Below, piece by piece: positions 1 through 21,700 of a DNA stretch of 64,000 nt. Numbering within the stretch: the first letter of the stretch is position 1; every line of letters begins with the position of its first letter. This DNA comes from Klebsormidium nitens. Lineage: Eukaryota > Plantae > Klebsormidiophyceae. The notes under the pieces are model-generated. The model was not told where the DNA came from. It searched no databases and worked only from the letters and a program-made list of their open reading frames with translations. The stretch lies in the NCBI GenBank assembly GCA_000708835.1, contig DF237397.1, forward strand, positions 10,262-74,261, given 5' to 3'. Position numbers and translations under genes: made by a program.

Positions 1-559
1 GTCCACACTGATCCCCTTGGCGGGACTGACCGCTTTTGTCTAAACCGGGAAATGCAACCAAGGCAGCAAATTAGTATTGAACGCGGTTGGTCGAGCGCAC
101 TGTGATGAACAAAGAAGCACTAAGCTCCGGTCACGATCAATATCAATCTCGGCATCTTGTTGCAGTTCTTCCCCCGGCAGGCTTCGTCATTGCACGACAC
201 CAGTTCGCCAATATAGGGAAAAGGAAGGCATGAAAAGAAACAACATAGGGGACAAAAAAGTGAAAGAGGTAAGGCGAAGGGACAGAAGATGAAGCAGGAA
301 GCAGAAAAGGAAGGGGGGGGCAGACGAACGAAAGAGTACTGGATTCAGAAAGACAACAAGGCGTGACAAGATGATCATGACGGGGTTCAGAAAAGGAGGC
401 ACATGAAAAAGAACAATGTGTGCAACGGAACGGAACGAAAAAAGAACCAGACTGGTGCGAAACGGAATAGAAAAACACGCGAACAGACGGGAAGACGCGA
501 GAACACAGATTCAAGACAAGAGAAGAGGCGAAGCAAGGAGGAAGACGAAGACCATAGAG

Positions 560-2717
560 AAGTGGGCAGAGGCGCACGGTGATGAGGTGCGCCAATAGAA
601 GCGACAAAGGAAACGGGACGCGGAGGTTAGAGAGACGCGAACAAAATTTAAAACATGAGGAGGAGAAATGGCCGGAAAAAAGGGGTGACGGAAGGAGAGC
701 AACGAGAAATCAGAGGAGGATTGGCAGAGACGCACCGTGACTGGGTGCGCCAACAAAAGCGAGAAACGAAAAGCGACGGCGGAGGGCAAAGGAATACGAA
801 CAAGAAGGAAGACGCGAGGGGAAGAAGTATAAACAGAATTAAAGGCAAAGTAAGGGGGAGAGACGGAGAACTGGAAAGAATCAGGCACAAATGTAACGTG
901 ACTGGGTGCGCCAGCAAAAGCAAACCAAAAAGGACGCGGAGGGTAGGGAGACGCGAACAGAAAGGAAGACGCAAGGAGGAAGAATTAGAACAGAACTAGA
1001 GGCAAAGCAAGGGGAAGAACGAAGAACAAGGACGAGATCAGGCAAAAGCGCAACGTGACTGGGTGCGCCAAACGACGCGAGAAACGAAAAGCGACGCGGT
1101 GGGTAGAGGGCTGCGAAGAGAAAAACAGACGCGAGGAGAAAATGTCAGAAAAAAGTTAGTGGCAAAGCAAGGGGGAAAACGGGGAACCAGAGAGAGCTGG
1201 ACAGAGGCGCTCAGTGACTGAGTGCGACAACAGAAGCGAGAAAGGGAATACAACGCGGAAGAGAGACACGAAAAGAAAGCAAGACTCGAAGAGAAAGAAT
1301 CAGCAGGAAAACACAAGGGGTGAAGGAAGGAGAATAGCAAGAAAACAGAGGAGAAAAGGGCAGAGGCGCACCGCGATTGGGTGCGCCAACAGAAACGAGG
1401 AACGCGCACGGAGGAAGAATCAGGAAAAGAAGGGGTGAAGCAGAAAGCGGAACGAAGAACCGGAAGAGAAGTGGGCAGAGGCGCACGGAGACTGGGTGCG
1501 CCAAGAAAGAGGAACACCACGCGGTGGGTAGACGGATGCAAACAGAGAGGAAAACACGAGGGGAAAAATCAGGAGAAAAGAAGCGGTGAAGCAAGGAGAG
1601 GACGACGAACCAGAATAAGATCAGGCAAAGGCGCACGAGGACTGGGTTCGCATACAAGAGCGAGAATGGAAACGACGCGGATTGTAGAGAGACGCGGACA
1701 GAAAGGAAGACGGCAAAAGAAAGACAAGAGACGAGGCGGAGCAAGGAGAAAAAGGGAAAGGTAGAGAGACGTGGGCAGAGGGGAACAGAGACTGAGTGCG
1801 CCAACAGAAGCGAGGAAGGAAACACGACGCGGAGGGCAGGCAGGCGCGAACGAAAAAGCGACGCGAGGAGGAAGAGTTAGGAGAAAGAAAGCGGTGAAGC
1901 AAGGAGAGAAGCTTAGAACCGGAAGGAGATTAGGCAGAGGCGCACCGTGACTGGGTGCGCCAACAAAGCGAACGTGGCGATGAAGGTATGTAGACGCGAA
2001 CGAAAAGGAAGACGCGAGGAGGCAGACTCAGGAAAGAAGTAGGAGCAAAGCAAGGACAAGAACCTAGAATCGGAAAGAGATGAGGAAAAAGGGCATCGTG
2101 ATTGGGTGTGCCAGAAAAGCGAGAAACGAAAGCGACGCGGAGGGTAGGAACCGCGAACGGGATGGAGGACGCGAGGAGAAAGATTAGGCAAAACAGGAGG
2201 GGTGAACGCAGGAGAGCAACGAAGAACCGGAAGAAGATTGGCAGAGACGCACCGTGACTGAGTGCGCCAACAAAAGCGAAACGAAAAGGGACGCGGAGGG
2301 CAGGGGCAGAGAGATTCGAACAAACATGGAGACGCGAGGAAGAATGATAGCTTGAAAGAAGGGGTAAAGGAGGGAGAGCAACGAAGCACCGGAAGAAGAT
2401 AGGCAAAGAGGCACCGTAACTGGGTGTGCCAACAAAAATGAGAAACAAAAGCGACGCGGAGAGTAGAGAAATGCGCACAGAAAGGAAGAGACGAGGAGGC
2501 AAATTCAGGAAAGACGTAGAGGCAAAGCAAAGGAGAAAGTCAAAGAACCAGAAAGAGACTAGGCAAAAGCGCACCGTGATTGGGGGCGACAACAAAGGCG
2601 AGAAACGAACAGCCGCGCGGTGGGTAGAGAGATGCAAACAGAAGAGAAGAGGCTTGGGGAAGAGAAAAGGCGAGGCTTGAAGACAGACAGAATTTGCGAG
2701 AGTGGGTATAGGCGCAC
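560..2717 (-). repeat. Intronic tandem array, about 14 degenerate units of about 155 bp; each unit copies the 3' end and 5' splice site of exon 2810-2718
   Basis: The plus-strand core GGCGCACCGTGAYTGGGTGCGCCAACAAAAGCG recurs near 569, 727, 893, 1048, 1205, 1363, 1479, 1629, 1784, 1936, 2092, 2245, 2408 and 2567. The authentic junction is at 2710-2735. Spacers are strongly purine-rich on the plus strand (pyrimidine-rich on the sense strand). Confidence 0.9.
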
Positions 2718-5700
2718 CGTGATTGGGTTGACAAAAAGCATGCGGCGGCCTGAGTGGTACGCCCATATGCTGATCAGCCGCTCTAGCAGGTAACAGTAGC
2801 AGTGCAGGCTCTGCGAATGCAAGAACAATCTCGTCAGGTCGATTTGGATGGAATTGACAATGAGCTCAAGAAAGACCGGTCTGCAACTACGCAGCCTCAT
2901 TATTCTACGCTCCATCTCAGCTTGTCAAAAGGAGCGTCGCCTAAAACCTCCAAGGGTGATAGAATCGTAGACTGATAACGAGGTCTCTCTATTATCAACA
3001 AGACTGGATCCATGTTCACATCCCTCGCGTCGAATTCCCCTAGCCGCGGAGTTGAAACCTGCGTTCTTCTCGTTTGATCTCCAGTTCCATGTGGATCGTT
3101 CCCGATTGAAGTCTCAGTTGAAAATGCTCTGGATTTTTGACGGACAAGAATACGTCGGACGATAAGAGCATAATTGTAGAAAGTAGACCCCTCCTTACGA
3201 GTTCTGCGTTGAAGTTGGTGAGTACCGGATGCGGAACAGGATGGTACGAGCAATTCACGCAGAACGTCGAGCAGTTGCAACGTCGGTACTCCACGAGAGC
3301 GGGGCTGACCAGAAAAGAAGATGCTCCTGCGATAGGCATACTGGGGGGCTACGCTCACCTCGTATTCCGGGCTGCTCGAGACCCCCTGGGCCAGAATGCA
3401 TACGTTTGCGTCCCGGTGCGTGTGAAACCACATGTCATCGACCGCGATGAAGAAGTCCCTGCGGGAGATCGAATCTGGACTTTTGCTGAACCATCTTAGC
3501 TAGGAGAAAGTCCAGTTGGCCGATCCGTCCGGGAAAGCGGTGCCCAGGATGGAGCTTCGGTTTCGACCCTCAATTTTGGGGTTGGGTTCTGCCGTATTTG
3601 GGGTCCCATTTGAGAGCTTGGAAACTCAAGAAAAGGAGCTCAGTTGGCAGATTCATGCACCTGAAAAGTCGATTAGAAGCCAGTGCAGAGAAGGCCCTGA
3701 GCCGGATCGTCTGCGGCATAACCAATTTTTTAGCGGTGATAAAAGTTCCTCTTACGGTTATCAGGAAAGAGTGGTGCACGCAATGCGCTAGACACTCAAT
3801 TGTGCCAAGAGCACAAGAGTTTAGGCGGGGGCTTGACAGACGGGGGCAGCGAGCGATCAACGGAGTACTAGTTGAAAATTGTTCTTTGGAAACATACAGT
3901 TCCAAACCTGAACAGGTAGCTCAACGTGAGGCGCTGTCAGCCTTGGTCTCAGAAGTCGTGCTGGAGGGGTGATGGCAGCCCACAAAAGCGGACAGATCTC
4001 AGAGGTAGCTCACAGGTGGTAGATGTGAGCTCAGAGTACGAAGCGCATGTACTCGTGAAAGCTATTTTGCCACATGACGCCCTAACTCATGGAAAAGTAA
4101 TAGCGCTCCACTTTATCCAATGTGTGGCTCAAGGTAAGGCGCTGTCCAACCAAAATTCACAGCTACCACCAACCTTGGAATTCATTGGGAGCACTCGAAA
4201 CCGAGGGTTTCAAAGGCCTCACTTACATCACGAAGCGCGTCTGATCGAGGAAAGGAGTTCTTCAATGACCTGATAAGGACCCGAAAGCAGTCTACCGGGC
4301 ATACTCAGCTTTGACGGTCCCCCTGTCCACGTACCGATCAGGCGTTGGTTCGAAAGAATTGCAGCGAACCGACAGGAGTTCAGCTTCAAGCTTTCCGAGC
4401 TCTCACCTTATCAAGCACATGTACTTCAAGAAGCTCTCGGTCCAACGCAACAAGAGGCGCTGTCAGCGCAATACGTAACACCAGAGTCGAACCTTGGAAA
4501 GTATATCGGAGACAGTCTATGAATGCTGATATTCAAGGGCGGAAAATGCTGAAGGTCTCACTCACCTTACGAAGCGCATGTACTCGAGAAAGCTCTCCGT
4601 CCGCATGACGAAGTAGCTCATGAACACCCAGGCCCCGCCGTCATTGGGCATCGGAGGCGCGTCCGGAGCGTCGGTTTCGCCGGTCCGGTGACCGAACAGT
4701 ACGCCAAACGCGCGCTGAAAAGCGATCCTGCGGGCACAATTGGCTTGTTGAGTATGTACGAACGGCTTGCATCTGCTCGTGTTAAACGTCCTGATAGAAC
4801 GACAGACGCGGTGGTTTGGCTTCGGAGGCACGTCCGGAGCGTCGGTTTCGCCGGTCCGGTGACCGAACAGTACGCCGAACGCCCGCCGAAAAGCAATCCT
4901 GTGGGGAGGTCAAAATGGCTCATGAAATATGCCCAAGCGGCTTGCATTGCCTCGTATAGGAATTTGAGATCAAACGGCTGTTCGCCATCGTTGGGCATTG
5001 GCGGCGCTTCCGGAGCATCGGTTTTGCCGGTCCAGTGCCCGAATACTACCCCGAACGCTCGTTGAAAAGCAGTCCTGCGGCAAGCAATGAATGTCGAAAT
5101 GAGAAGCCCGACCCGTTTTTGAGATCCGGGAGGCAGTGCCAGACTGAAACCAAGTTACGGAGCGGTAAGGGGAAGGATTCGCTGTTGCTGGGGGAACGGC
5201 ACTTCCATTTTACCGGTCCGGTGACCGGATGGTACGTCAAGCGCTCGTTGAAAAGCGATTTTATGGGCGGTAAGATGTTTGTTATGGAAATTCCGACCGA
5301 TTAGAGATCCGGAAAGCAGTGCCGAAGTGAGACCAAGCTGCAAACCGTTTCAAGAAGGCTCCGCCGTTGAGGGGCTTTCGGCGACGCACCTGGGGAGTCC
5401 GTTTCGACAGGCCGATGACCAAATATTTGCCCGAAAGCCCGCTGAAATGCAACCTTGGGTGGAATCAAAAGTGGTTCAGTGAGTATGCACAGACGGGTGC
5501 GCTGTCCTGAGATAGGAGTTGAGGTCCAAACGGAGCCGTCCTTGAGCTTTGGCGGCGCTTACAGAGCTAACCGTCTAATGTCCAGAAAGCCGAATGCCAG
5601 CTAAAAGCAATCCGGCGGGATGGAAATCATCGTTAGGGGCACCATGCGAAGTTTTAACTTTCTCATAAGATAATGACAGCCTTGAAAGACACTTCATCAA

Positions 5701-8700
5701 GCAGATTGCCGTCGCTTTGACATCGAAGGCGCTGCCGAAGAGTCCGTTCCGCCGAGCTGGAGTTCAACGGTACGCTCAATGCCCAAGGAGAGAACACGAA
5801 AAGGAATAGCAACGGCTACGTAGCAAGCATATTGATTGCAAGTAAGGTGATGAAGCTTACCAATATACCAGCCAGAGAAGGAAGAGAGGGGTGCATGCAT
5901 GCAGGCGTGACGTTTAAACCCCGTGCAGTGCTCGTGACTGCAACTAGAGGTTTTCCAAGCTCAAAGCATCCGTGCTTCGTAGTCGAAAAGTGGTTTGGAT
6001 GATTTTGAGGACCAAAGCTAGCGCATCCATCTAACCAGACAGATCAGACGTAGACGACAAAGGACCGTTTGAGGGTCGTTTTTGCAGTGAGCGTCGATAA
6101 GACCGCAACCGCGCCCAAATCTAGCACACAGGACATTCAAGATTCTCAGCCAGAAATCACTTCAGCGACTGCAGTCTGAGTCAGGGGATGTCCGGAATGG
6201 CGAGTTAGACAGAATGTGACACGCAATGAAGAGGGCAGAAAGGGTGAAACGGATCTAAGCTGACAGGCTCACTTGCAGTGCTTGTGGCTTCGGTCGCAGT
6301 GCTCGTAAAAGTCCAACACGCGTACGTCGTCCTCCCCCCCGTCTGACCAGAAGTAGATTGCATCGCCGTGGCTTCGCTTCCCGATGGCCGATAGAATCGA
6401 GTCCTCCGCCGCTTGCGAGATGGCTCTCTGCGCAGACCACGTTCTAGAATCAGTCGGTATGGTTTAACATTCATTTACCGGATTACCGAAAGTAAAGCGC
6501 GTCGTCGTGGCTCTGCTTTCGGGTCGGTCTCACAATCGAGTCCTCTGCCGCTTGCAACAGGGCTTTGTGCAGATACAGAAAGACAGAATTTTAACTTTGC
6601 TTTACAAGGTCAGAGAAAATTTTGGCAGTTGCTTCCGCTTTATATGTTCGACCCGAAAAACCACGTTGTTTCGCCTAAAATCATGGTGGCCCTTACCCAT
6701 CGAGGCTCCGCTGCTTGCACAAGAGCACTCTGCACAGACGCAATCGTTAGATCCTTCAAAGATTGTTTTTCCCAAAGAATGTTGAGCTTATGCCACGGTC
6801 CGACACGAACGTAGACTACTTTGTCATGGCTCCGCTTCCGGGTAGCCTTTCAAATAAGAGTCCTCCGCTGCTTACGAGATGGCTCTCTGCACGTATCAAT
6901 GTCATTAGTGCGTAAGAAGCAAATTTCAGGTGCAGGAAAACGAGAAAAACCCGCAGCTGCGTGGTCCCGCTCCTGGTGGCTAACAGAACCAAGTCATCCG
7001 TGGCTTTCGAAAAGGGCTCTCTGCACGTGCGAACAATTCAAGCGGTCAGTGAGACAAGTTTACTTCCCGTCAAATCCATAAGAAATGCGCCATAGAGCCG
7101 CCTCTTCTCGAATATCTGGATCGACTCTTCCGCCGCTTGCAAGGGGGCTCAGACCATTCAGATAGGAGAGAAGGTTTGTTCCTCTCCTCGTTCCGGACAG
7201 ATTCAGAACACGTCGCAGTGCCTTTGCTTCTGAATTGGTCGCCGAGCTTTGACGTTCACCAAAGAAAGCCTTACATTCAAAGCCAGTGCGAAGCAACCAA
7301 TAGCACCGAGACTCTTGAGCTGTACCTCAACATCTTTTAGACAGACCTGCACTCACCCGCTTATCGACGGCCCTCCAGCTCTGGAACCCAATCCACTCCT
7401 GGGGGTGTAATCGCGCAGCGTGTGCGGCCACCGCCAGCATGCCCGAGAACTCGCACAGCAGGTTCTGGTAGTACGGGTCCGTCGCCAGGGGGAACATTGT
7501 GGGGGCGTCCAAATCGTCCGAGTTCGGACGCCGCTGGCCGGCAGCCTGGAGAAAAGGAGTGAAGGGAAATGATGAGACTCGTTGAATAACCTATAAATAT
7601 CGAAAGTAGTAGGAATCCGGAGGAAGTCGCACAGCAGGTTTTGGTAGTAAGGGTCCGTTGCGAGGGGAAACTTCGCGGGGGCGTCCAAATCGTCCGAGTC
7701 TGGACGACGCTGGCCGGCAGCCTGAGGAATAGGAAAGAACCCAGAACTTGACTTCAGTCGGTCTGAAAATTTGAAGAAAGGCTTAAAATACGAGGGGTTC
7801 GCACTGCAGTTCTGAGACAAGTACCATTCCATTCGGCTACGGGGGACACACGTCCGTAGGGGGCGTACCGAAACCGGTTCGGACGTTTGGACGACCGCGA
7901 ACGGTTGACGAGCCGTAGGACGAAAGACGACNNNNNNNNNNNNNNNNNNNNNNNNNNNNNNNNNNNNNNNNNNNNNNNNNNNNNNNNNNNNNNNNNNNNN
8001 NNNNNNNNNNNNNNNNNNNNNNNNNNNNNNNNNNNNNNNNNNNNNNNNNNNNNNNNNNNNNNNNNNNNNNNNNNNNNNNNNNNNNNNNNNNNNNNNNNNN
8101 NNNNNNNNNNNNNNNNNNNNNNNNNNNNNNNNNNNNNNNNNNNNNGACGCCGCGACTTGCAGCCTGGAGGAAAGAGACGACTATTGGCAGAGGACAAAAA
8201 GAATCGAAAAGTTCACGAGCAAAAGCAGGAGATTCGGAGGGTTCGCATAGCGGGTTCTGGCAGTACGGGTCCGTCGCGAGAGGAAACATGGTGGGCCGTC
8301 CAAATCGTCTGAATTCGGACGCCGCTGGCCCGCAGCCTGGAGAAGAGGTAAAAAATGAATTGCAAGTAGATACAAAGAAGCGAGAGTGTCAGCGGCTTAT
8401 GCAGAGAACTTCGGAGGGATTACAGAGCAGCTGGTAGTACGGCCCATCGCCAGGGGAAACATGGTGGGCCGTTCAAAAGGTCCGTATTCAGACGCCGCTG
8501 GCCGGCAGCCTGGAGATCAGAGGAGATTAAAAGGCATATTGAGATTTCTCGCTCAGAGAGCAGAAAAATTGAAAGGTTTGCACAGCAAGCTCCAAAATCG
8601 TACGGCTTTACCGCCAGGGGAACATGGAAGGGGCGTCCAAATTCCGTTCAAATTCGGAGGCCGCTGGCTGGCAGCGTATCTAACACAAACAAGGTCAGGG

Positions 8701-10655
8701 CGACTTCTCTCTTCGTGATATGCCCGAGTGCTTCGGAAAACCAATCTGGCAGTACGGGTCCGGCGCAAGGGAAAACAATCTAGGGGCGTAGATTGTCAGT
8801 ATTCAGACGCCGCTGGCCGCCAGCCTGGCGATTCTCGAGGAGCTGTCTTGTAGATTCTTTCGAAAACTGAAAGTCTCGAAGGTGAAGAAGACAATCTGGA
8901 GGTATTGCACGGAAGAATTTATGGTTGCGGGTCATCACCAAGAAAGTCGCAAAGCAATCTGGACGCAAGGGTTCATCGTTTGGGCATCCAAAGATAACTT
9001 CGCTGGTTCAGGAACTTATCTGGGTCAGCGGCCGGATTCAGACGAATGCGGTCAGATCTGAAAGTCAAGATATTGTAAAACAAGGAGATTTCAGAGAAAT
9101 TGCACAACTGAGTTTGTCAGTAGTTGTCTGGTGCCAGAGGGACCATCTGGAGGCGTCGAGATCAAGGGCGTCGAAGTCAATGCTTTTGCCCAGCCGCGCG
9201 GTAAGAACAGTGAGACAAGTACATTAGTACTCGTTTCCTATGTGAAAATTTGTACACTTGCCAATCGCTGCTGATGCTCTGAAGAGCGTACAACGAAGTA
9301 GACATCCGCTCTAGTTGGAGGCATGTGCAGACGAATACGTTTGTCGAATTTGGTCGCCTCTGGCTGATAGCCTTAACTAGGAAAGAGAAGGTGAAACAGC
9401 CCCGAAATATCCTGGTTTGGAGTCAAAAGGCGACATCCCTGGAAAGTCGTACAGTTACTTTCACGAAGTGAGAGGCTGTTTACTGCGGACCCGACTGACA
9501 AGCGTTCAATCGAAACCTCACCTGATTCAGCCCTCTGTACAGGCTGTTGTTGTACAGGTTGTGGTAACATGCTGTGCTGTGGTACTGCTGGTAGATGACC
9601 AGGGTGAGGCTGGAGGGTCTTGGCTGACCGATGTTGGTCAGGGGCTTGGTTCTGAGCAATGGCCGGTGTTCAATCTGGCAAGCAGTCAAAAGTCTGTTCT
9701 CAGGGATTGCTCTTGTGGCCTTGGGGTTGGAAGGCTCTCTGTCTCAGAAAAGCGTGTCGTAAGGGCTTGTAGTGGCTTGCTTATCATGTTTGCCGTCCAA
9801 GCCTTCTGAACATATCCAATTCAATATCCGTCAAAGGACTCTCGGATAATCGCGTCGGCCTCCTCACCATAAGGAAACACGCAGATAAGCCAGAGCGGCA
9901 CCGAAACGATAGCCTACAGAGAGGATGGTGTTGTAGAACCTGTCGAACCAGTAAGCTGAAAATCAATCAGCGGATTTTGTAGGTAAAAGTGGCTAAATTT
10001 AAGCAAGAGTCAATGGAGGGGGAGCCTGTCTAACCTTTGAAGTTTCAAAAGCTTATGTGTTCGAGAACGACTTAATAGGTGAAACGTGTAAGGGGCTCAA
10101 AAGACTCTTTCGCTCTGGGCTGATTTGGTTCCATTTTATGGAGACAAGTTGCACATGACCGTTACTGACGACACTCTGGGGTCAATTCCATTGGGCATGG
10201 CTTCATTCTGTTGGCAGAGAACGGTCAGATGGAAAGGCGTGAATAAATAATTGGCAAAACTTCATACAGCACCTGAAATGGTTCACAGAACTGAACTTCA
10301 TAGGAGAGCGACATCATGCCCTTGGACAATCTGTTGTTATTTCTTGCTGAACATTCTGCAATCCTTGAGTGTATGCCAGCAAGGGAATCATAAAACATCT
10401 GCTTCAAGTGGAAACTTCAAGTATGTACAACGCTTCACTGAGTGAAAGCATTGCTGCCAGAATGTAAATCCAACAATTCTCAAACTTTAAGCAGTCAGTG
10501 TAGTAAACCAGCGTATCACGGAAGGTTGGCTCTGGCGACCTTACCTCGACGCTGTCTCGAGTCAAGATGTACATTGCTGACATCACCAGTATGAAGGTAG
10601 CGGCCAGGCTGGCAAGGGCATTCCGGAAAGCATGCTTGAGAGACAGGCCTCGCAT
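2718..10655 (-). CDS. Type II membrane protein homologous to the C-terminal half of plant BUP/At5g04480-At4g01210-type glycosyltransferases; 3' end lies beyond the left edge of the window
   Basis: Phase-consistent GT-AG exons in transcription order: 10655-10545 (MRGLSLKHAFRNALASLAATFILVMSAMYILTRDSVE, one hydrophobic anchor), 9674-9522 (...LVIYQQYHSTACYHNLYNNSLYRGLNQ), 7545-7357 (...SDDLDAPTMFPLATDPYYQNLLCEFSGML...WIGFQSWRAVDKR), 6427-6273 (...GDAIYFWSD...FYEHCD), 4727-4566 (IAFQRAFG...PPMPNDGGAW...FVMRTESFLEYMRFVR), 3458-3359, 2810-2718 (SLHCYCYLLERLISIWAYHSGRRMLFVNPIT); 321 codons in the window. The motifs match, in order, my recollection of the Arabidopsis At5g04480 C-terminus (SLYRGL; DDVDA...YY..LCE.GGM; WIGFQSWRA; IYFW; LPPMP..G..W; MPTPSFLEFVMFSR; HCYC..LE...WAYHSGR.M...NP). 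The first two exons are less certain than the other five. Confidence 0.85.
4020..5460 (-). repeat. Degenerate copies of both ends of exon 4727-4566 in the flanking introns
   Basis: Acceptor plus exon-start copies (plus strand CCGGTCCGGTGACCGAACAGTACGCC...AAAAGCGATCCTGCGGG) near 4850, 5025, 5215 and 5400. Donor plus exon-end copies (CTCACCTTACGAAGCGCATGTACTCG) near 4403, 4218 and 4035. Confidence 0.85.
6530..7165 (-). repeat. About 5 degenerate copies of the acceptor and 5' end of exon 6427-6273
   Basis: The plus-strand motif GAGTCCTCCGCCGCTTGCGAGATGGCTCTCTGCGCAGA (true copy about 6398-6435) is echoed near 6538, 6703, 6858, 7010 and 7122. Confidence 0.8.
7600..9050 (-). repeat. At least 6 degenerate copies of the acceptor and first about 95 nt of exon 7545-7357, interrupted by an assembly gap
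   Basis: The plus-strand motif GGTAGTACGGGTCCGTCGCCAGGGGGAAC...TCGGACGCCGCTGGCCGGCAGCCTG recurs near 7640-7725, 8145-8165, 8255-8340, 8430-8512, 8595-8675 and 8745-8828, with a weak trace near 9030. Confidence 0.85.
7932..8145. other. Assembly gap (214 N)
   Basis: Run of N inside the repeat array. Confidence 0.99.
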
Positions 10656-11605
10656 CACCCTGTCTCAGCCTTGCCCCCAAGCCTAGTTGTTGCCGGTACG
10701 ATGCAGGCAATAGAAACCCGGACTCCGGTTTGCTACCTTCTATGCACTGCTTGCTGCTTCTTGTAAGTTTGATCCGACTGGGGAATGCAGACAGGGGTAG
10801 ATGTCTGAATGTGGTCGCTCATTAGGATATAGAAACCTGCCTAAGCCGCTCTTGATCAAATGCGCTGGAACAGCAGCAAAATTACTGGATTCGAAAGCAA
10901 AACCTTCTTTCTAAAACCTTCAGAAGCTTCTGTTCCGTCAAACCGATCATTGCAACGGGGTAAGACAAAACGAGCCGGTGCGCACGACTAGTTCTCTTTG
11001 GGCTGGAGAGGCTCATCAACTATTGAACCAGCATTCAGTCAACAGGTCTCAGCTGGAAGAAAGTGTTGCTGACTTTGATCCATGCGCGCACCAGCTCCGC
11101 CTTCTCCGCAAACTTCGGGAGGGCTCTCTTTGATCGCAGCCTTTCCACCTAGAATGCAGCGTGTGACCACGCTATAATGTTGCCAAGTTGCCACCACAAA
11201 CTGAACAGCTTGTAGCCAAGCAAGCAATGGTGTTGGATGCCTTTGCTGCAGACTTGCTCCTTGATGCCCTTCTGAACACCTCTGCGAATGTCTCTTGGGA
11301 CTCGAGTCTTGTGCTTCTTATTTCTATCAGTGGTAACCAGGTAAGGATCCAGCCAGCCTAGCTCAGCAATCAGGTTTCAGATTGAAAGCGTTTTAAGGGG
11401 GAAACCAGCATCGACTTATACCAATCTCTATGGAATTATAATATAGCCTATAGGCAGCGAGAGCCGCATTCTGCTGCAGTGCGCAGCAGGTTGCTTAATT
11501 TCAGCCGTGCTGCTTTGCCCACACGGAACCATACATTCTGAGGGTGCATATATGGTATATGGCCCAGGGCACAGCGCCTTGAGCTGTCCCAGGCTAGCTG
11601 AGTAT

Positions 11606-12750: not shown

Positions 12751-15700
12751 ATGGGGTTCTTTGTATCTGCATTCCTGTCTTTGATAGGCTACGGATGGGG
12801 CCTTGCTCTAGGTCTCATAGCAGGCTACCTTTACTACCTGCATCCAACAACCAAGGCCGAAAAGGTAAGGTTAAGAGCCGTGTTCTGAATCAAGTCTGGT
12901 TACACTTCCCCTTTTCAGGGTTGATCGGGGTGAAGTCTGACTCAGTTCAGCAAGTAAGCCATAGAATTCCTTTTGCAGGCGGCTATCGCTGCCACCTTTG
13001 AAACCTCGAAAGATGTTGTGCAGCCCCATAGACAAAATGATGTCTCCAGCTTTTACACAAGTCCATTGCTCTCAGTGTAGCTATTATGAAAGTGGGCCCC
13101 TACAGAGGGCATAGGGTCTCCTCGCTGCCACCGGATTGTCAGATGAGATTTAAAACATTCTTCTTGATAATTGTTCTCTGTTTGACTTGAGGAACTGGCT
13201 CCTACTTCATCTGGATGTCAGTAATTCCACAAAACATATGCATGTTCATCCAACTACCAGACATGTTAGTGCTGACTCGCTCATTAGTTTTAACGGAACG
13301 CGTACCCTCTACCTTGACAAGGTCTGGCCCAGTTGAGAAAGTGTCTTCTCTGGTTGCTGGTTGCGATGCTCACCTACTTAGCTTGTCGAATACAGCCATA
13401 ACCTAGCCCTCCCCCCTCCTCACAACCCTCAGCAGAACAAGAACTACGATCTCTCTGTTGAGGCACACCATCACTTGTTCCAAAGCCAATGAAGACGAAA
13501 TCAGGGGCTGTCATTTCCATCGAAGCCCATGGCAGCCACAGCACTGACTCTCAGGACTTCAAAGTGCACCCTGTCAGGATAAGGCATACCCAAAGGCGGT
13601 CTGACGCCGTATGGTGAGACAGTTTGTAAGTCCTAAGAAATTACCCCAATGACAACCACAACACCAGTGATATCTCCTCTTCAGACCTGTCTCCCATTGT
13701 GTTCTGCAGCCCAAGAAGCCAAAACTTCAGCGGGCAAGGACGCTCAGCCCCTCTATACTCAAAAGCGCCATGAACCAGATTCCCGCTTGGACGATGTACC
13801 CTGATTGGGATAGGGTGAGCTTTGTTGGTATTTCCTTGTTTTGGATGCTCTATGCTCGATTGTATCATCCGTTGGATTACCTTTTGTTACCAGATCAGGG
13901 CCAGAATCGTCGAAACCAGAATATTTGCACTTCACCTTTGCAAGGCCTTCCACTCACATACACTTGATTTACAGGCTTTATGATACAACGGCACCGAACA
14001 GATAGTTCGCAGGGACTTAGAAGGATCCTTCCGGTTAGTATTACATGGTACCAAAAGAGGGGGTGTGCTCACCGGGAATGGGCCTGCCATTTGGCTGTGG
14101 TCAGGCTGAGGGTACACAAATCGGGTCCCCCAGTCTATGGGTAGAGAGTTTACCCCATGAGCATCTAATTCTCGACGTCAAGGTTCAGAGAAAGAGGCAC
14201 GTGTTCCACTCCCTCCTTTAGTAGTGCTCGTAGTTCGCCTTGACTCGTCAGTTTCGGTTGGATCCGGTCGGGGCAGGGACTGGGCTCTTCCGCACTTGAT
14301 GCCAACTGCTGATAGTTGAAGTCTTATACCAAGTTGCGGAACTCCTCTTATCAAACCCTTTCTGGCAGTCTGCTGAAACTCTGAGTATGGTTGTCTACCT
14401 TCTTCGCAGACCAGTTTTCTCAACAAGGCAGCCAGTAAGCTATGGCCATACCTAGACACCGCCGTTCGAGACACCGTCTACGAGATGGTCCCGCCAATCA
14501 TTGAGCAATACCGCCCCAAGCAGATTACCAAGATTGAGATCGAGGAGCTTTCGCTGGGGGACTTTCCGGCCACTCTCGAAGGTATGTGGTCGTGTTACAC
14601 ATACTGCATGATCAGCTCCCTGAAATTCCGGCCCTTCAACTACGAACGACGATGGAAGATTGTTTTGAACTCGGCTAGTCCAAATCTGTGCAACTTTGGG
14701 TGTACTTCCACGTCAAAGTCTCTGACATATGCAGGGGCAACAAAGGCGGCCAAACATTTCCGTCTTTCCTTCACCTTCCGAAGTCTGGGGGACGTCTGGA
14801 TTCCTGATTAGTCGCTTCTCTGGTAACGGAAGAATTCTTTCTTCGGCAGTAGCTTGGAACCTTCAACATCTCTTAAGGCTGTAAATTTCGATGCTGCGGA
14901 TATATGGCAAGCTCAGATTGGAAGGCGGACGGTTGCGCCAGTAAATGTTCACGCCACCATGCATAGAAGCCCTTTATCAAAGCTTCCGATGCTTCCGCAG
15001 GCACTAAGGGTATTTTAGTAGGAAGGATGTCAAAAGAACTGTGAAGAGCACACAAGCTTGACTATTCAGCTACTTCCACAGGCGCTAAAGCGTTTGACAC
15101 GGTGGATAACTTAAAGGCCATACACGATTGACTCTTGAAATGCTTCTGCAGGCGCTAAAGTGTTTGATACAGTGGATGACGAGATGATTGTCGAGACGAC
15201 ACTGAAATGGGCGAGCAACGGGAGGGCAAGGGTCGGGGTCCATGCGTTTGGCCTCAAGCTAACTGTAGAGGTAAGATCGGAGTTCCACCCACTCTTCACA
15301 CAGTAGTACCCCGTCTCACGTTGATGCAACTACGTTGATATGGCCGACCGTATCGTCCATATTCTAACGCCTTTTTGGCTTTCGGGCTGCTCTTACAGGC
15401 GTCGAGTACTCCCTGTCGTCCCTTGTCTGAACAAGGTTACTTGCCGGATTATTCAGCAGAATTTAAACAAGCCTGGAATCTCCGGACGCATCTCGGTATG
15501 TTCGGACATTTGTCGACGTTCCAGACGGCTCCTGCAGGCGTCCGAGTCGTAACAGAGCTTCCTTCTCGAGAGCCAGTTGCACGATATCAGGCTAGGTTGC
15601 CTGAAAATTTAGCACGTATCCAATATTCTCGAACAACCGGGACAAATCTGGATACGTCCGAATTTTCATCAGCGGATCGGACGGCGTCCGAGCCCTCGCA

Positions 15701-18700
15701 GACAATCCTTCCCAAGAGCGTCGGGTGCATGTGATCATAACAAAATGCCTTGAAAGACAATCTTCCAACGAATTATGATAATCTGCACAGAATCGGACCC
15801 ATTCGGACAACTCTTTGACCTTTTGAACGGCCCCTGCAGGCGTCCGAGTTCTGGCTGTCCGTCCCCGTCCGCGCCACGTTCCGCCCGCTCGTGCCCGTCT
15901 TCCCCTGCTTCTCCAGCATCCGCGTCACCATGCCCAACAAGCCACGTGTCGACTTCTCGTTGAAGATCGGCGGGGCTGACGTCATGGCTATCCCAGGGCT
16001 CCTTCAGATCGTGCAGGTGGGGGGACATGCAGCTTTTCGTTATCGGTGTTGTAGAACGTTGAAGCACGCTCTGAGTGTTTTCGAAGGTCGATTCTGCTGA
16101 CGTCATGGTCATTCCCGGCCTCTCGGGGTCGTACATAGTCGTTTGTAAAGTCGCAAACGTTTTCGTCGCTTCTCAGAGGGTCGGAGGATCGGATTCGCCG
16201 ACTTTTTCAGACGAGCTGAATGCAATCAACTGCTGCAGGTGACAAGCGTTTCTTATGTTCCGACGATCAGCGCGTTCGGTGAAATGAGCCGCCGCACTTG
16301 AGCAAGTGGTTTTCATCTCCCAATGAAGACTGTGTTGAGCAGTTTGTTTGGGTCTCGAGTTGTCGTACTGGAGGACTAACGTGTCCAGATTCTGTTGGCG
16401 TTGCTGATGTCAGGGCCATCGGAATTCGGCTTGTTTGAAGCCTCTCCTTGTCAAATCCATCCTGAGCCTCTTTCTGCTTCTTTGATCCCCTCTTATCAAT
16501 GTGGATCAAAGGCCTCTGTTAAGCTTCCTTGGTCATTAGTCCAATATACGCCGCTTGCTTATTGGTTCCTTTTGTAATTAATCACTGTGTAGTACAAAAC
16601 TGGACATCAAATGCACGCAGCAGAGTGTCACGATTGATATCCGCAAAGGGCACTCACTACTTTCTTTTGTGCTCTTGCGTTCGAAGTGCGTGTGTGGAGC
16701 GCAGAAGCGGAGGCACAGAAGCTTCATTAGTTTGTCACACATCAAACAGCTGCAAAATCAACTGCAGGTCAGTAAAAGGTCAGTGACTGTCCTGGTCGCG
16801 ATTGAACGCCTGCACGCTGACATTTGCTGACGTCGTACTGACGTGGCAGGACCAAATACGGCAAGCAGTGGCGCAGCTCTTCCTCTTCCCGCAGTCGATG
16901 GAGGTCTACACCATCGAGATGGGCTCGTAAGTCGTTCAGGTTACGAATTACGGGTTTACGGGTCACGGGTTTCGTTCGGGCAGTTACCAAAACTGCAGAC
17001 ACCTAAGGTTCACCGTCGACCGAAAAGTACTAGGCTCACCAGCTTGGCATCTCCGGTCCGCGTACAGCTTTTGTACACTGCTTCTCTGGCGAAATCCTGT
17101 ACTAGGTCTGTACATTTTATGCTACGTGATTGATTGAAGCATTTTGATTGCTCCGGAGGGCCGAGGATGAGCGCTCACCCATTTCGGAACCTACCCTCTT
17201 TTTCGACTTAAAGCTTGTTCCATCAGTACAAGCAAAAGTAGCTCTGTCCCTTGTGTCTACGACAATGTAATCGAGCTTGAAGTCGGCACTGCGGTCTTGG
17301 ATATCGTAGCAACGTTGCGATACTGCTAAAGGAGACTATTTTTGACTCGTTTGGCCAGCCAAAGAGGACAATAGCAATTGCTTCGGGGATTGTGGACAAG
17401 AGCCAGATTCGATTGTCCAGGCACCTTTTCCGTTGAGTGGAGACTGCATATATTGCAATGACGTGTTGAACCACGGATTCCAAGGGGCAGCTTGAATTGA
17501 CTCTCAGAATCTCTTGATCTTCATCCTTGAAACAAATAAGACGAGCGCTTTCAAGATTCTTTGAGGACACTGGGCCATCCCGAAAACGTTTCTCGATGAG
17601 TTCCCAAGTCACCGTCCAAGTTACTGCAGCCAAATCATCACCGGGAAACCAGTACTTTCCCCTCAGTTGATGGATGTACCACACCTTCATATCTATGAGA
17701 ATCCATCTATCAAGCTGCCGTCTTTCTTCGCTTACAGAACGACTCAAAGACCGACTGGCGCGTTGTACGTCAAACTGATCGAGGGCAAGGACCTGAAGAA
17801 GACGGACGTGTTTGGGACTTCAGATCCGTTTGTGGAGTTGTGGCTAGACGGCAGTAAACGATACACTAGCGACGTGAGTAGTCTATTTGCTTTTTCTGGT
17901 CTCCCTTTTCTCTGTCAGCTAGTGGTACTTCCGTTCCGGTTTCCACCTGTTCTTGCGCTTGAAGCCAAGAACAAACCAATTCAGGTTGCTTCCATCATAT
18001 TTAGATTCTGGTTGTGTCATCCCTTTGTGGGGCCTTTCGGTAAAAGCCAGCAATCCCCTTTTCGGTCGTTCATATTTTGTCATTGCACCTTCTGTTCCGT
18101 AATCACGATAGACATCTCTGTCTTTATGAGAAGATCAAACATCCTGTCGTTCGAGCCTCTGATTCTCAAATTTGGGACGGCAGTAAAGCTCACTCAAGAA
18201 TACTAAGGTTTCACCGTACTTCCTATCTCACTTGTTTTGCTTGCTGTCCTTTTCTTGCCTCTGTGCTCTTTTCGCCTTACTTCACTTTTCCCTTTCGAGA
18301 TTTTAACCGCTTCTATTACCGCCCTTTTAGTGAGCGTCCAATATCTTAGGAGCCCTTTGGCGATCTATGCGATCAGATTCTGAGTTGGAGATACATCTAG
18401 TGAGTTCTCGGGTTGCAAAAATCGCACGTTGAACATTCAGCGGACAGTAGCAAGGATCATACATTGCTTTGCGCTAGTGATGCGCTTTTTCCTACGCTCT
18501 CATTCCATTTACCACTTTCCAGAGGCGCTTCGGCAACGCAAAAACAATCTAGTGTGTCAGATGCGTTTTCTAATGCAAGCGTTCTCTGTTTCAGGTCAAG
18601 CACAATACGCTCAACCCAAAGTGGAACCAGATGTTCAACTTCCTGGTTCGTGATCCGACCAACGAACGGCTCACGATACAGCTGTTGGATCGGGACAAAG

Positions 18701-21700
18701 TGGGGTCAAAGAAAGTAAGTTCGACCTAACCCGAAACTAGCACACAGTTACGTCATTTAGAAACCGTGAGTATGTAAAGCCTTGTCTTCTCTTAATGTTC
18801 CTCCGCTAGATTCGGTTTCACTGAGTACAGGAAGAAATCAAACTGGGGGCCTGAAATGGAGGCTGACTGTCCGGATGTCGAAGCTTTTATGGAGAACCGA
18901 ATGTCACAGCCTTCAAGTCTTGTTGAGCAATTTTTTTAATGTCCTACTAACATGAGGGTTGTACGCTGCCTCGTCTAGATATCAAGAGTGGTCTTGATGA
19001 TTGTACGAACGTGGCTTGCCTATTGAAGTCGATTTGGATTGTCGCTAGCCGGAAAAGAGTTTTAAACCGCACTTTTGAGATTCTTGAACCGGAATTGAGT
19101 CTCTCTCATACTGAGGCCTATTCTTGATCCTTAAATATCAGATCCAACTTTTATTTCGCGCTGAAATTTCCAATATGGGACCACATGCGCAGTCTACCTT
19201 CAGTGTAACATACAGCTCAGAATCGCAAATGCCTCGATCGCCCTATTCTAGAATTCATTGAAGGAGCGTGAATGCTTCGAGGAACAACAGGGGTCTATGC
19301 TGGAGCTGAGACCCCTACTTCATGTAGACGATGTCTACTTCAAAACCGAGACGCGGCAGAGAAAATGATAGAATCGACGACTTGAGTAAAGGGAATGAAA
19401 AACCGCGCAGTCCAAACTAAGACAGGACGTACTTTTTCAGGTGGCGATGTGTCAAATCGACTTTGCGGACCTAGAGCCCAACGAGTTGCGCGACTATTGG
19501 CTGGACCTGAAGAAGGATCTGGAAGGCGACGCAAACCCCAAAAACGCAAAGTTCCGTGGGAAGCTCCACCTAGAAGTTGAATACCGTCCGTTTGCCGGGG
19601 AAGATTTGGATCCGGTTGAGGTGGGCGGAGTGGTGGGCGGAACGGACGGAACGGAGATGATACAACCGGACGTGGAAATTCCGCAGGGGGGCGGGCTGCT
19701 TTCCATTACGATAGGGCAGGGGATCGATTTGATGCCGGTCGATCGGGGCACGTGTAATGCGTACGTGGAGTTCAAGTTTAGGAACGAGTTGCACATAACC
19801 AAGGTGGGAAGATCTTACTCGTTTCGCCTTCCATCCCTCGTTTCGTCTGACACTTGCGTACTTATTCTCCTTGAGGCCAGATCGACGAGAGCTCTAATAG
19901 AAAATCTCTGCTGCTTCGGCTTTCTCCGTGAGGGCGGAATGCTTTTCTGCCGTGTCATTTCACTAGTTACAACCTGTATTGCTGACGAGTGTCTAAGCTG
20001 AGAGACGCGATACGCTTTCGCCGCTCGAGGGCGTCTGCGCTCCTACTCTCTTTCCTTTTTTTGTGGTAAGTTACGCAGCTGAGGCCTGCGGCCTAGAAAT
20101 GGTGGTGTCATGCTCGTTTGTTCTAGAGCTGAATAGTGATTTGTTCTCGATTCACGTTCTTGGGTGCGACGTACCTTACCAGGCTGAGGTTTGCCATTCA
20201 AGCGCCTATCCGTTTTCCGGTCCTGGAAGCGGCGATGCTTCCTGAATAGCCGTCACAATCTGTCCGACTAGGGCCGTTTCAATTGTTCAAGAGGGAGATT
20301 CTCAAACGCCTTTCCCTACTAACGATTTATGCAGGGACACAGTTCCGAGAGGGTTAGTCTTCTCCAAACCCCATCAGTTGATGTGCAATAGCATAAGCAA
20401 AGCACCAAGGAAATGGTTTATTAAGCTAGCCGACGTTCTGCCGATGACCCACGCGACTAGTCGGCCTGTACAACTGGCAGGACGTGGAGCGTCTAATCTC
20501 GTTGAATGGGTGTAAGAACCTGCAAGGTTACTTCGTGTACGGCTTTTACCGACCGGCATGGTAGGATTCCGAATGTTCGAAAATGATAATTAATGAAGAA
20601 ATACGACCGATTTTGGCGACTTTTTTAACGAATGCGACCCTGAATCCGAATCTCCCCTGGAGGACCATCCGAGCACCTTTTCGCCCCTGAAAACCCGCTT
20701 CTGGAGTGACCGGTTGATACTTGTTACTTTCCGACCGTGCTCGACCAATTTTTTTCTGAATCCGAATGATCATTTTCCAAACCAAAAATCGGATTTCTAG
20801 CTTTCCGATAGGCAAATCAATATTTAACCATTCGGAATCATACCTTGCCGGAACAGTATTTGACCCGGTTGCGAACTCAGTTTGCAAGCAACCCACTGAT
20901 CAAACCAATGCCTCTGCTATGCAGGACGTGAAGAAAGACACGAACCCAGACTGGGGCGAGCACTTCCAGATTCTGTGCGACAGCCCGCCGCGGGACGAGT
21001 TTCTGTTCATCCGGGTGTGGCATCGCAACCGGGGGAAGGATAAGCTATTGCGGGCGATGACGAACATCAAGCATCTTGTGAAGGCCAACATTGAGGGCAA
21101 GGTAAGAAGGGCTGAGGCATCGCTACGTTGCGAGCAGCCTGCATAGTCTTTCTGCGGAAAGTCAGGGGTGTCCTTTTTCGAAATCTCTTTCTGGCTGCTG
21201 TAAGAGGGGGCGTTCCGCCACGTGGCTCTTGGGCGGACACACAGTCCTGGACCTGGGACTAAGTTTTGCCGTGGACTTGTTACTGCGTGCACTTTCGGGC
21301 GACCATCAGAGCGGAGCTTCGCCTTGAATTGTCGCCTTAGGGTACCGGGTCTACTGACGCCTTTTTTTGAATTGTGGCCTGTGAAGTCTTCTCTTGCGCA
21401 TGCGGGAATCTATGAGAGCTGAGGTCACTTCAGAAAGGTCAGGCGCAGCTTTGCGGCATTCTCAAGAGACCAACGTCACATTTTCTGCAACAGCTTTCCA
21501 GTTTCGATTAAACGCAACGTCTTTGGGGGCCACTGTGTATGCGCAAACGCTTGCTGGATATTTGCTCAGTTGCTCGACGCACTTGCAAGAATACTGGGCC
21601 CTCTTGGCAGAATCACTTGCCAAAAGTCAGGTCAGAATGGGAGCGCACGTGTTTGAGTTGGAAATATACCCCTGCAGATACATATACCTTCAAATTCCTC

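Follow-up and report, generated by a model that had tools for sequence, protein, structure and literature searches.

To our knowledge, few Golgi transferases that act in pollen-wall assembly have been defined genetically, and BUP is one of them. It is described as a Golgi glycosyltransferase that is needed for the pollen germination plaque and possibly acts in pectin synthesis or delivery (PMC7733995). In the literature that we searched, neither the activity of BUP nor a role of its long C-terminal third has been reported. In WbbM, an O-antigen glycosyltransferase of Klebsiella, residues 7–264 form a DUF4422 domain, a uridine diphosphate (UDP)-galactofuranosyl transferase and the founder of CAZy family GT111; the C-terminal half of the protein is a GT8 galactopyranosyl transferase (PMC12269835). 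MUCI70, the founder of GT116, is a galacturonosyltransferase of the pectin rhamnogalacturonan I (bioRxiv 10.64898/2026.09.18.752628). No paper naming both DUF4422 and Arabidopsis was found in the literature searched. Here we describe a gene in a 64,000-nucleotide (nt) stretch of the alga Klebsormidium nitens (contig DF237397.1, positions 10,262 to 74,261), referred to as the window. The gene lies on the minus strand between 10655 and 2718 of the window and encodes the C-terminal domain of BUP-type proteins in stand-alone form. The explanation that we favour as a whole, with a probability of about three in four, is a selected eight-exon gene for a type II anchored protein with a single glycosyltransferase A (GT-A)-like domain, likely a nucleotide-sugar glycosyltransferase of the Golgi.

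Seven exons were read directly from the letters. They sum to 963 nt or 321 codons, have AG/GT borders throughout and join in compatible phases (0, 0, 0, 2, 2, 0). Exon 1 (10545..10655, 37 codons, donor GTAAGG) translates as MRGLSLKHAFRNALASLAATFILVMSAMYILTRDSVE. From its ATG (10655–10653) it encodes a short basic cytosolic tail and a hydrophobic signal anchor of ∼19 residues (the best 19-residue Kyte–Doolittle window scores 2.13, with basic residues ahead of the hydrophobic stretch); an in-frame TGA (10665..10667, same strand) stands 12 nt 5′ of the ATG. Exon 2 (9522..9674, 51 codons), which is joined to exon 1 in phase 0, contributes the stem and then the first β-strand of the domain (LVIYQQYH...SLYRGLNQ), with the C-terminal end ...LVIYQQYHSTACYHNLYNNSLYRGLNQ. 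The DDLDA motif, LCEF and WIGFQSWRA are encoded by exon 3 (7357..7545, 63 codons), YFW and C..C by exon 4 (6273..6427, 155 nt, ending in phase 2), PPMP by exon 5 (4566..4727, 162 nt, phase 2 to phase 2) and DFFIAVDD...NVCILAQ by exon 6 (3359..3458, 100 nt). Exon 7 (2718..2810, 31 codons) reads HCYCYLLERLISIWAYH and is an internal exon, with the donor GTGCGC. As judged from the sequence, the layout is that of a type II membrane protein with a short cytosolic tail, a single signal anchor and a lumenal domain. The preliminary description of this DNA had proposed the same hydrophobic first exon, start codon and upstream stop, spliced in phase 0 to an exon that carries the SLYRGL segment. Our reading returned the same exon, which is also kept in an ortholog (see below), and the same phase 0 junction. 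The 321-residue translation given there matches ours in length, but it is incomplete at the 3′ end, where position 2718 is a splice donor.

For all searches the seven exons were used one by one, unjoined, and structure was predicted for a natural homologue (P0004, from K. subtile). Exons 2–7 are co-linear with the domain of both stand-alone and fused relatives, with per-exon tblastn E-values from 3e-22 to 7e-5 in a 64-kb database. A profile of the family found exons 2, 3, 4, 5 and 7 in the window at 23 to 95 bits, and exon 6 at only 3.6 bits. Scanned exon by exon, Pfam gave no family on any single exon.

Homologue searches with the exons recovered stand-alone and fused relatives. Exon 3 alone gave 88 phmmer matches among 1.84 billion representatives, 18 of them at E ≤ 1e-10. 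In the long matches (800–1330 amino acids (aa)), which stem from ferns, a liverwort, angiosperms and the zygnematophyte Closterium, the region of similarity is C-terminal. Those of the fused proteins that were scanned with Pfam have PF13692/PF00534 at residues ∼400–545 and no family on their last ∼330 residues, in agreement with the preliminary description of the land-plant BUP type (a Glycos_transf_1 domain followed by a conserved C-terminal region). The short matches (324–653 aa) have a hydrophobic N-terminal anchor that is followed directly by the domain. Several are complete open reading frames (ORFs) on EukProt Trinity transcripts; complete transcript ORFs with such anchors include the K. 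subtile protein P0004 and several EukProt or Logan proteins. The type II arrangement of tail, anchor and domain is common to the ortholog of the window gene and nine other stand-alone relatives. Homology of the window gene to the BUP-type C-terminal domain extends over ∼315 aa and includes the conserved motifs. The top phmmer match, a 3413-aa sheep repeat protein with 32 short repeated matches (P0001), was held spurious and left out.

We aligned 61 natural family members, 28 in a first alignment and 33 in a second. Invariant in the 28 are D92 (in DD[LIV]DA), F135, W138 (in WIGFQSWR), W171, P224, C271, N299 and W301 (P0004 numbering). The first Asp of the D-x-D within DD[LIV]DA (D92) is invariant and the second is mostly kept; the window gene has DDLDA. 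Among the invariant and nearly invariant positions that fall in exons 2–7, the window gene departs from the family at N299 alone. PHROGs and NCBIfam scans of the 28 members gave no match.

Because the land-plant and Closterium relatives of 800–1330 aa have a GT1 domain ahead of this one, the seven exons could be the 3′ portion of a complete BUP-type gene, with the GT1 exons located further upstream. We regard this as hardly credible. The N-terminal 650–890 residues of five fused proteins gave no tblastn match in the 64-kb window or at three paralogous loci (L001, L003 and L004), and the open frames in the 2.1 kb upstream of exon 1 had no Pfam match. No Glycos_transf_1 or Glyco_trans_1_4 domain was thus found ahead of the BUP-tail domain for the window gene. 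The space upstream is bounded at 2096 nt by a divergent synaptotagmin (SYT)-like gene on the plus strand (first coding exon 12751..12861, ATG at 12751). The same head-to-head arrangement is kept in the ortholog, at a distance of 1720 nt. A tblastx comparison of the two loci, from the SYT start to exon 2, showed conservation only of exon 1 (with ∼80 nt upstream of it) and exon 2. Exon 1 itself has a conserved Met, a signal anchor and an in-frame stop before the ATG, and the K. subtile transcript encodes a complete 371-aa ORF in the stand-alone layout. The absence of the recognised glycosyltransferase domain, suggested in the preliminary description, is thus supported, and so is the picture of the C-terminal region as a stand-alone anchored module, in which the window gene, its ortholog and the K. 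subtile ORF are alike. The presence of a stand-alone BUP-tail gene is confirmed. A word search with the glycosyltransferase part of the Riccia protein returned land plants only, among the 8000 candidates sharing most words, a result that permits no inference on a GT4 protein in Klebsormidium.

The ortholog came to light when the open frame that surrounds exon 3 was used in a word search, which returned one 80-aa Joint Genome Institute (JGI) protein with 95% identity. Its contig (L005) is a gap-free stretch with all seven exons and an eighth. Exon 1 of L005 (4774–4881) reads MRTPSLKYAFRGAVASLVAGFILVM... and is identical to the window exon at 23/36 positions, with the same start Met. Identity is 38/51 for exon 2, 60/63 for exon 3, 27/33 for exon 6 and 30/31 for exon 7. 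Over 318 codons, with counts pooled exon by exon and the exons left unjoined, the two genes share 84.3% amino acid identity with 1.20 synonymous (dS) and 0.10 non-synonymous (dN) substitutions per site (omega, dN/dS, 0.084). These values indicate strong purifying selection on all seven exons, exon 1 included. Since the seven exons are conserved at this omega, the locus appears to be a selected gene and not a fragment.

Further copies exist in Klebsormidium. The K. nitens protein GAQ92086.1 (KFL_009190050, ‘hypothetical protein’, locus L001) is encoded by eight exons with intron positions as in window exons 2–7; as it is only ∼57% identical to the window gene, it is a paralog. It sits in the 90% cluster of the 371-aa K. 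subtile transcript protein, which is the closest short relative. The annotated GAQ92086.1 (405 aa; L001:10001–10252) has 34 residues ahead of the point where the 371-aa ORF starts, and its annotated start is probably too far upstream. The contig L003 was considered as the ortholog and rejected, because its identity of 57% is no higher than that of other paralogs; it represents a third paralog lineage. L003, L004 and L005 come from the JGI metagenome samples 3300060284 and 3300060285, in contigs of 36 kb up to 153 kb from a Klebsormidium-like alga. They hold three paralogs of the window gene with eight exons each and no GT1 part within 10 kb. Since three paralogs are present in these contigs, the duplications predate the species split. 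The putative free-standing enzyme of Klebsormidium is thus represented by at least three paralog lineages.

What the domain might do is suggested by its predicted fold. The AlphaFold model of the K. subtile protein P0004, the closest full-length homologue, has a mean predicted local distance difference test score (pLDDT) of 85.5 and a predicted template modelling score (pTM) of 0.82. Foldseek against the PDB gave one clear match, WbbM (6u4b, E 2e-6). VIA-align superimposed residues 52–316 of the model on WbbM 7–264, with Z 16.3 and a root-mean-square deviation of 3.2 Å over 215 residues. The runners-up among the Foldseek matches, when realigned, were all GT-A-fold glycosyltransferases with Z of 9.9 or lower. 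An exhaustive search of 48,161 chains, independent of Foldseek, placed all others at Z 9.4 or lower, and its runners-up were almost all GT-A-fold glycosyltransferases or related nucleotidyltransferases. PF14393 (DUF4422) is also present in 27 of the 30 clusters that are nearest by language-model features (ESM Atlas), with a score of 0.95. The Atlas fold search returned DUF4422 clusters as well, plus one whose annotation combines DUF4422 with TOD1_MUCI70. The order of conserved residues, D...N..Y..CE....N......G.xxxR, resembles what we take to be the pattern of DUF4422 in the PF14393 logo. The model thus points to a domain that is GT111-like in fold and that represents a eukaryotic branch which is new and has gone unrecognised, not a member of DUF4422 as defined by Pfam. 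A GT-A-like fold with GT111 of WbbM as its nearest neighbour supports the earlier suggestion that the C-terminal region is perhaps a second enzyme, and the AlphaFold and Foldseek analysis of the homologue did return a GT-A-like fold. Two side searches gave nothing further. A tblastn search of phage genomes with the domain, aimed at a DUF4422 gene, yielded chance matches only. WbbI of E. coli K-12 did not prove to be a DUF4422 protein: Pfam finds no family on it and its hhalign comparison with the family alignment was empty.

Several results count against a selected gene for a Golgi transferase with this fold. Protein collections contained no annotated or transcript-derived protein of the exact window gene. 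All relatives go on past the position equivalent to 2718 with an eighth exon of ∼51 aa, and blastn, tblastn and the family profile found no such exon in window 1–2717. N299, the Asn of ERLxNxWAYH that is invariant in the 28 relatives, is Ser in the window gene. On the side of the fold, PF14393 matched neither the exons nor the 28 members of the first alignment (E up to 10) nor the 33 of the second (E up to 1). Run against PDB sequences, the family profile did not reach WbbM and gave only a chance RNase III match (E 0.61). The link to GT111 rests on the predicted structure of a 57%-identical homologue from a paralog lineage, together with language-model features.

The first group of these results would fit a decaying or silent duplicate of the KFL_009190050 paralog, with repeat-swollen introns, a lost last exon and a changed invariant residue. 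Tandem arrays do occupy five introns of the window gene and none of the paralog. We nevertheless consider a dying copy quite improbable, since the seven exons are open, have canonical splice sites and evolve at the low omega given above even at a dS of 1.2, exon 1 included. The missing exon has a simple explanation. Exon 8 is present in L005, 1.28 kb past exon 7 (GTIEEQHELKERTAWLHFF...ESF, then a stop), and nothing like it is found in window 1–2717, so the window ends inside intron 7, which in the window gene is swollen by an array of ∼155-nt units. In relatives this exon carries the motif G..EEQH..R..W..F / TG.M.EQH..R..W..F, and at L001 it has 52 codons. The ∼51 C-terminal residues that thus lie outside the window model include three nearly invariant positions (G317, R328 and F335, P0004 numbering). 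A candidate last exon at ∼205–120 (GELVSCNDEA...) was rejected, as it has no AG acceptor and no likeness to exon 8 of L005. As to the changed residue, exon 7 of the window reads ERLISIWAYH and that of L005 (18409–18501) has the same Ser, which argues for an old change, fixed in this paralog lineage, and not for decay. The replacement of Asn by Ser in a core motif might mark a shift in specificity.

The second group leads to a different alternative, in which the domain has a GT-A-like fold and is not a transferase. It might then bind carbohydrate, or serve as a catalytically dead partner or regulatory scaffold of another glycosyltransferase. In land plants that partner would be the GT4 domain; in algae it would be a different protein. 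Besides the lack of a PF14393 sequence match, this is favoured by the fact that a fold alone does not demonstrate activity, and by the acidic motif, which departs from a strict DXD in some members. GT-A pseudoenzymes or anchoring subunits also occur in pectin synthesis, in GAUT1/GAUT7 (PMC7533613). Nonetheless, invariant polar and aromatic residues (D92, W138, N299, W301 and others) cluster in motifs, the stand-alone forms are kept under strong constraint in many algae that have no fused partner, and the closest structural neighbour, WbbM, is an active transferase (PMC12269835). On balance we judge a non-catalytic role unlikely and retain that of a Golgi glycosyltransferase.

The eight-exon gene (seven exons in the window) is best explained as encoding a type II membrane protein of ∼370 aa, in which a short basic tail is followed by one signal anchor, a brief stem and a single domain of ∼315 aa in the lumen of the secretory pathway. 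This domain is the same as the C-terminal third (∼320 aa) of BUP-type (At5g04480-like) proteins. In the mechanism that we consider most likely, it would act as a nucleotide-sugar-dependent glycosyltransferase in the Golgi lumen. DD[LIV]DA (D92 in the K. subtile homologue) may be the counterpart of the GT-A DXD site, and the conserved cysteines may form lumenal disulfides. Transcription of the window locus, its Golgi location, catalysis, donor and acceptor are what we infer here. In the ancestor of Zygnematophyceae and land plants the module would have been fused behind a GT4 domain of the GT-B fold, so as to yield in BUP a two-module transferase whose layout is analogous to that of WbbM (GT111 and GT8). 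The glycosyltransferase fold predicted for the BUP tail makes it probable that BUP unites two formerly separate enzymes.

A maximum-likelihood tree of the domain (26 sequences, quick IQ-TREE method, midpoint root for drawing only) agrees with such a history. The fused forms of embryophytes and Closterium make up one clade with a Shimodaira–Hasegawa-like approximate likelihood ratio test (SH-aLRT) value of 99. This clade also includes P0084, a 644-aa Logan protein whose alignment with fused proteins begins ahead of the domain. Sister to the fused clade (91) are the stand-alone proteins of Klebsormidium, and two further stand-alone groups lie outside. The tree mirrors streptophyte phylogeny and so fits a single fusion event, after Klebsormidiophyceae had split off and before Zygnematophyceae and land plants parted. 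The preliminary reading of the BUP tail as an independent module is supported. Its statement that the module is fused to a glycosyltransferase in land plants is correct as far as it goes, but the fusion is not confined to them, as the zygnematophyte Closterium has it too.

The introns of the window gene have an unusual make-up. Introns 2, 3, 4, 5 and 7 consist largely of head-to-tail, decaying copies (140–195 nt) of their own exon–intron boundary, and each of these echo copies bears a decoy acceptor or donor. On the minus strand, the exon 7 donor region is repeated in intron 7 (560..2717) as at least ∼13 decayed tandem units (∼150–157 nt). Tandem decayed acceptor copies are found in intron 2 (7623..8831, exon 3 acceptor, period ∼165–176 nt), intron 3 (6490..7155, exon 4 acceptor) and intron 4 (4807..5567, exon 5 acceptor); intron 5 (4037..4443) contains decayed copies of the exon 5 donor. 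In L005, arrays lie at 8945–9933 and 10286–11217, at junctions that are partly different from those in the window. L005 has exon 3 donor echoes that are absent from the window and no 155-nt array in intron 7, and the introns of paralog locus L001 are free of echo arrays. The arrays thus turn over quickly, as the three loci differ in array content.

An assembly gap (N, 7932..8145) lies within intron 2, inside the exon 3 acceptor array. Tandem arrays of this sort are prone to collapse during assembly. The junction of exons 2 and 3 is in phase 0, and the two abut without extra residues in the K. nitens paralog and in gap-free L005, so no coding sequence is expected to be hidden in the gap. Immediately after it, 7780–7931 (minus strand) is a strongly diverged echo unit. 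A short motif, ACTTGTCTCA, repeats near 9225, 7065 and 7815. On the other side of the gene, the SYT/E-Syt-like neighbour (12751 to ∼21200, plus strand) encodes an N-terminal anchor (MGFFVSAFLSLIGYGWG...), an SMP domain (∼14377–14560) and C2 domains (∼17700–21100).

Should the tail prove to be a conserved module of GT-A type that is free-standing in algae, BUP would become a candidate bifunctional synthase, and the fusion would date to the stem of Zygnematophyceae and embryophytes, a period of cell-wall innovation. The DUF4422/GT111 fold, characterised until now only in a bacterial O-antigen polymerase, would then extend to a eukaryotic family that is widespread and escapes the current Pfam models. 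The algal forms, compact and with one domain of ∼320 lumenal residues, would lend themselves to expression, structure determination and screens for the donor. A further proposal, that BUP-type proteins are two-module glycan synthases (GT4 and a GT111-like GT-A domain), the latter module having stood alone in early streptophyte and other algae until a single fusion before Zygnematophyceae and land plants parted, and possibly being a furanosyl transferase, is put forward tentatively and remains doubtful to us. It draws on analogy: since the nearest solved relative transfers a furanose, galactofuranose (Galf), furanosyl transfer is conceivable for the eukaryotic module as well. The donor might be UDP-arabinofuranose (UDP-Araf) in land plants and a Galf or Araf donor in algae. 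If true, this would fill in a missing class of plant cell-wall enzyme, and assays would be simplest with the small proteins of Klebsormidium.

Among the closest known systems, the paralog KFL_009190050 and its K. subtile ortholog EP00243_P008777, with eight exons, share with the window gene the stand-alone architecture, the intron positions and the N-terminal anchor. In contrast to the window gene, KFL_009190050 keeps the invariant Asn and has introns without echo arrays, and the two are ∼57% identical. The BUP/At4g01210-type proteins (Ceratopteris KAH7299398.1, P0005; Riccia KAL2613752.1, P0043; Closterium CAI5954627.1, P0060) are homologous over their C-terminal ∼315 aa, at 30–36% identity to the Klebsormidium homologue, and have in common with it the motifs IY.QY, DD.DA, WIGFQSWR, YFW, PPMP and HCYC..LE.L.N.WAYH. 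Unlike BUP (∼1000 aa), the window protein has ∼370 aa and lacks both the GT1/GT4 domain and the long N-terminal region, so that the anchor abuts the domain. TOD1/MUCI70 (PF04765, GT116), a plant Golgi pectin enzyme of GT-A type, is a fold neighbour through the one Atlas cluster that carries PF14393 and PF04765, whereas the BUP-tail family has no sequence match to PF04765. The GT111 domain of Klebsiella WbbM (6u4b) is the best structural match by a wide margin and covers the whole core of the domain, yet identity is 14% and neither the Pfam DUF4422 model nor the PDB sequence search links the two. The eukaryotic domain differs from it by extra conserved cysteines and by a conserved C-terminal extension of ∼55 aa (exon 8). 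Like the layout predicted for BUP, WbbM is a two-module enzyme (PMC12269835), with GT8 as the partner module where the plant proteins have GT4 of the GT-B fold.

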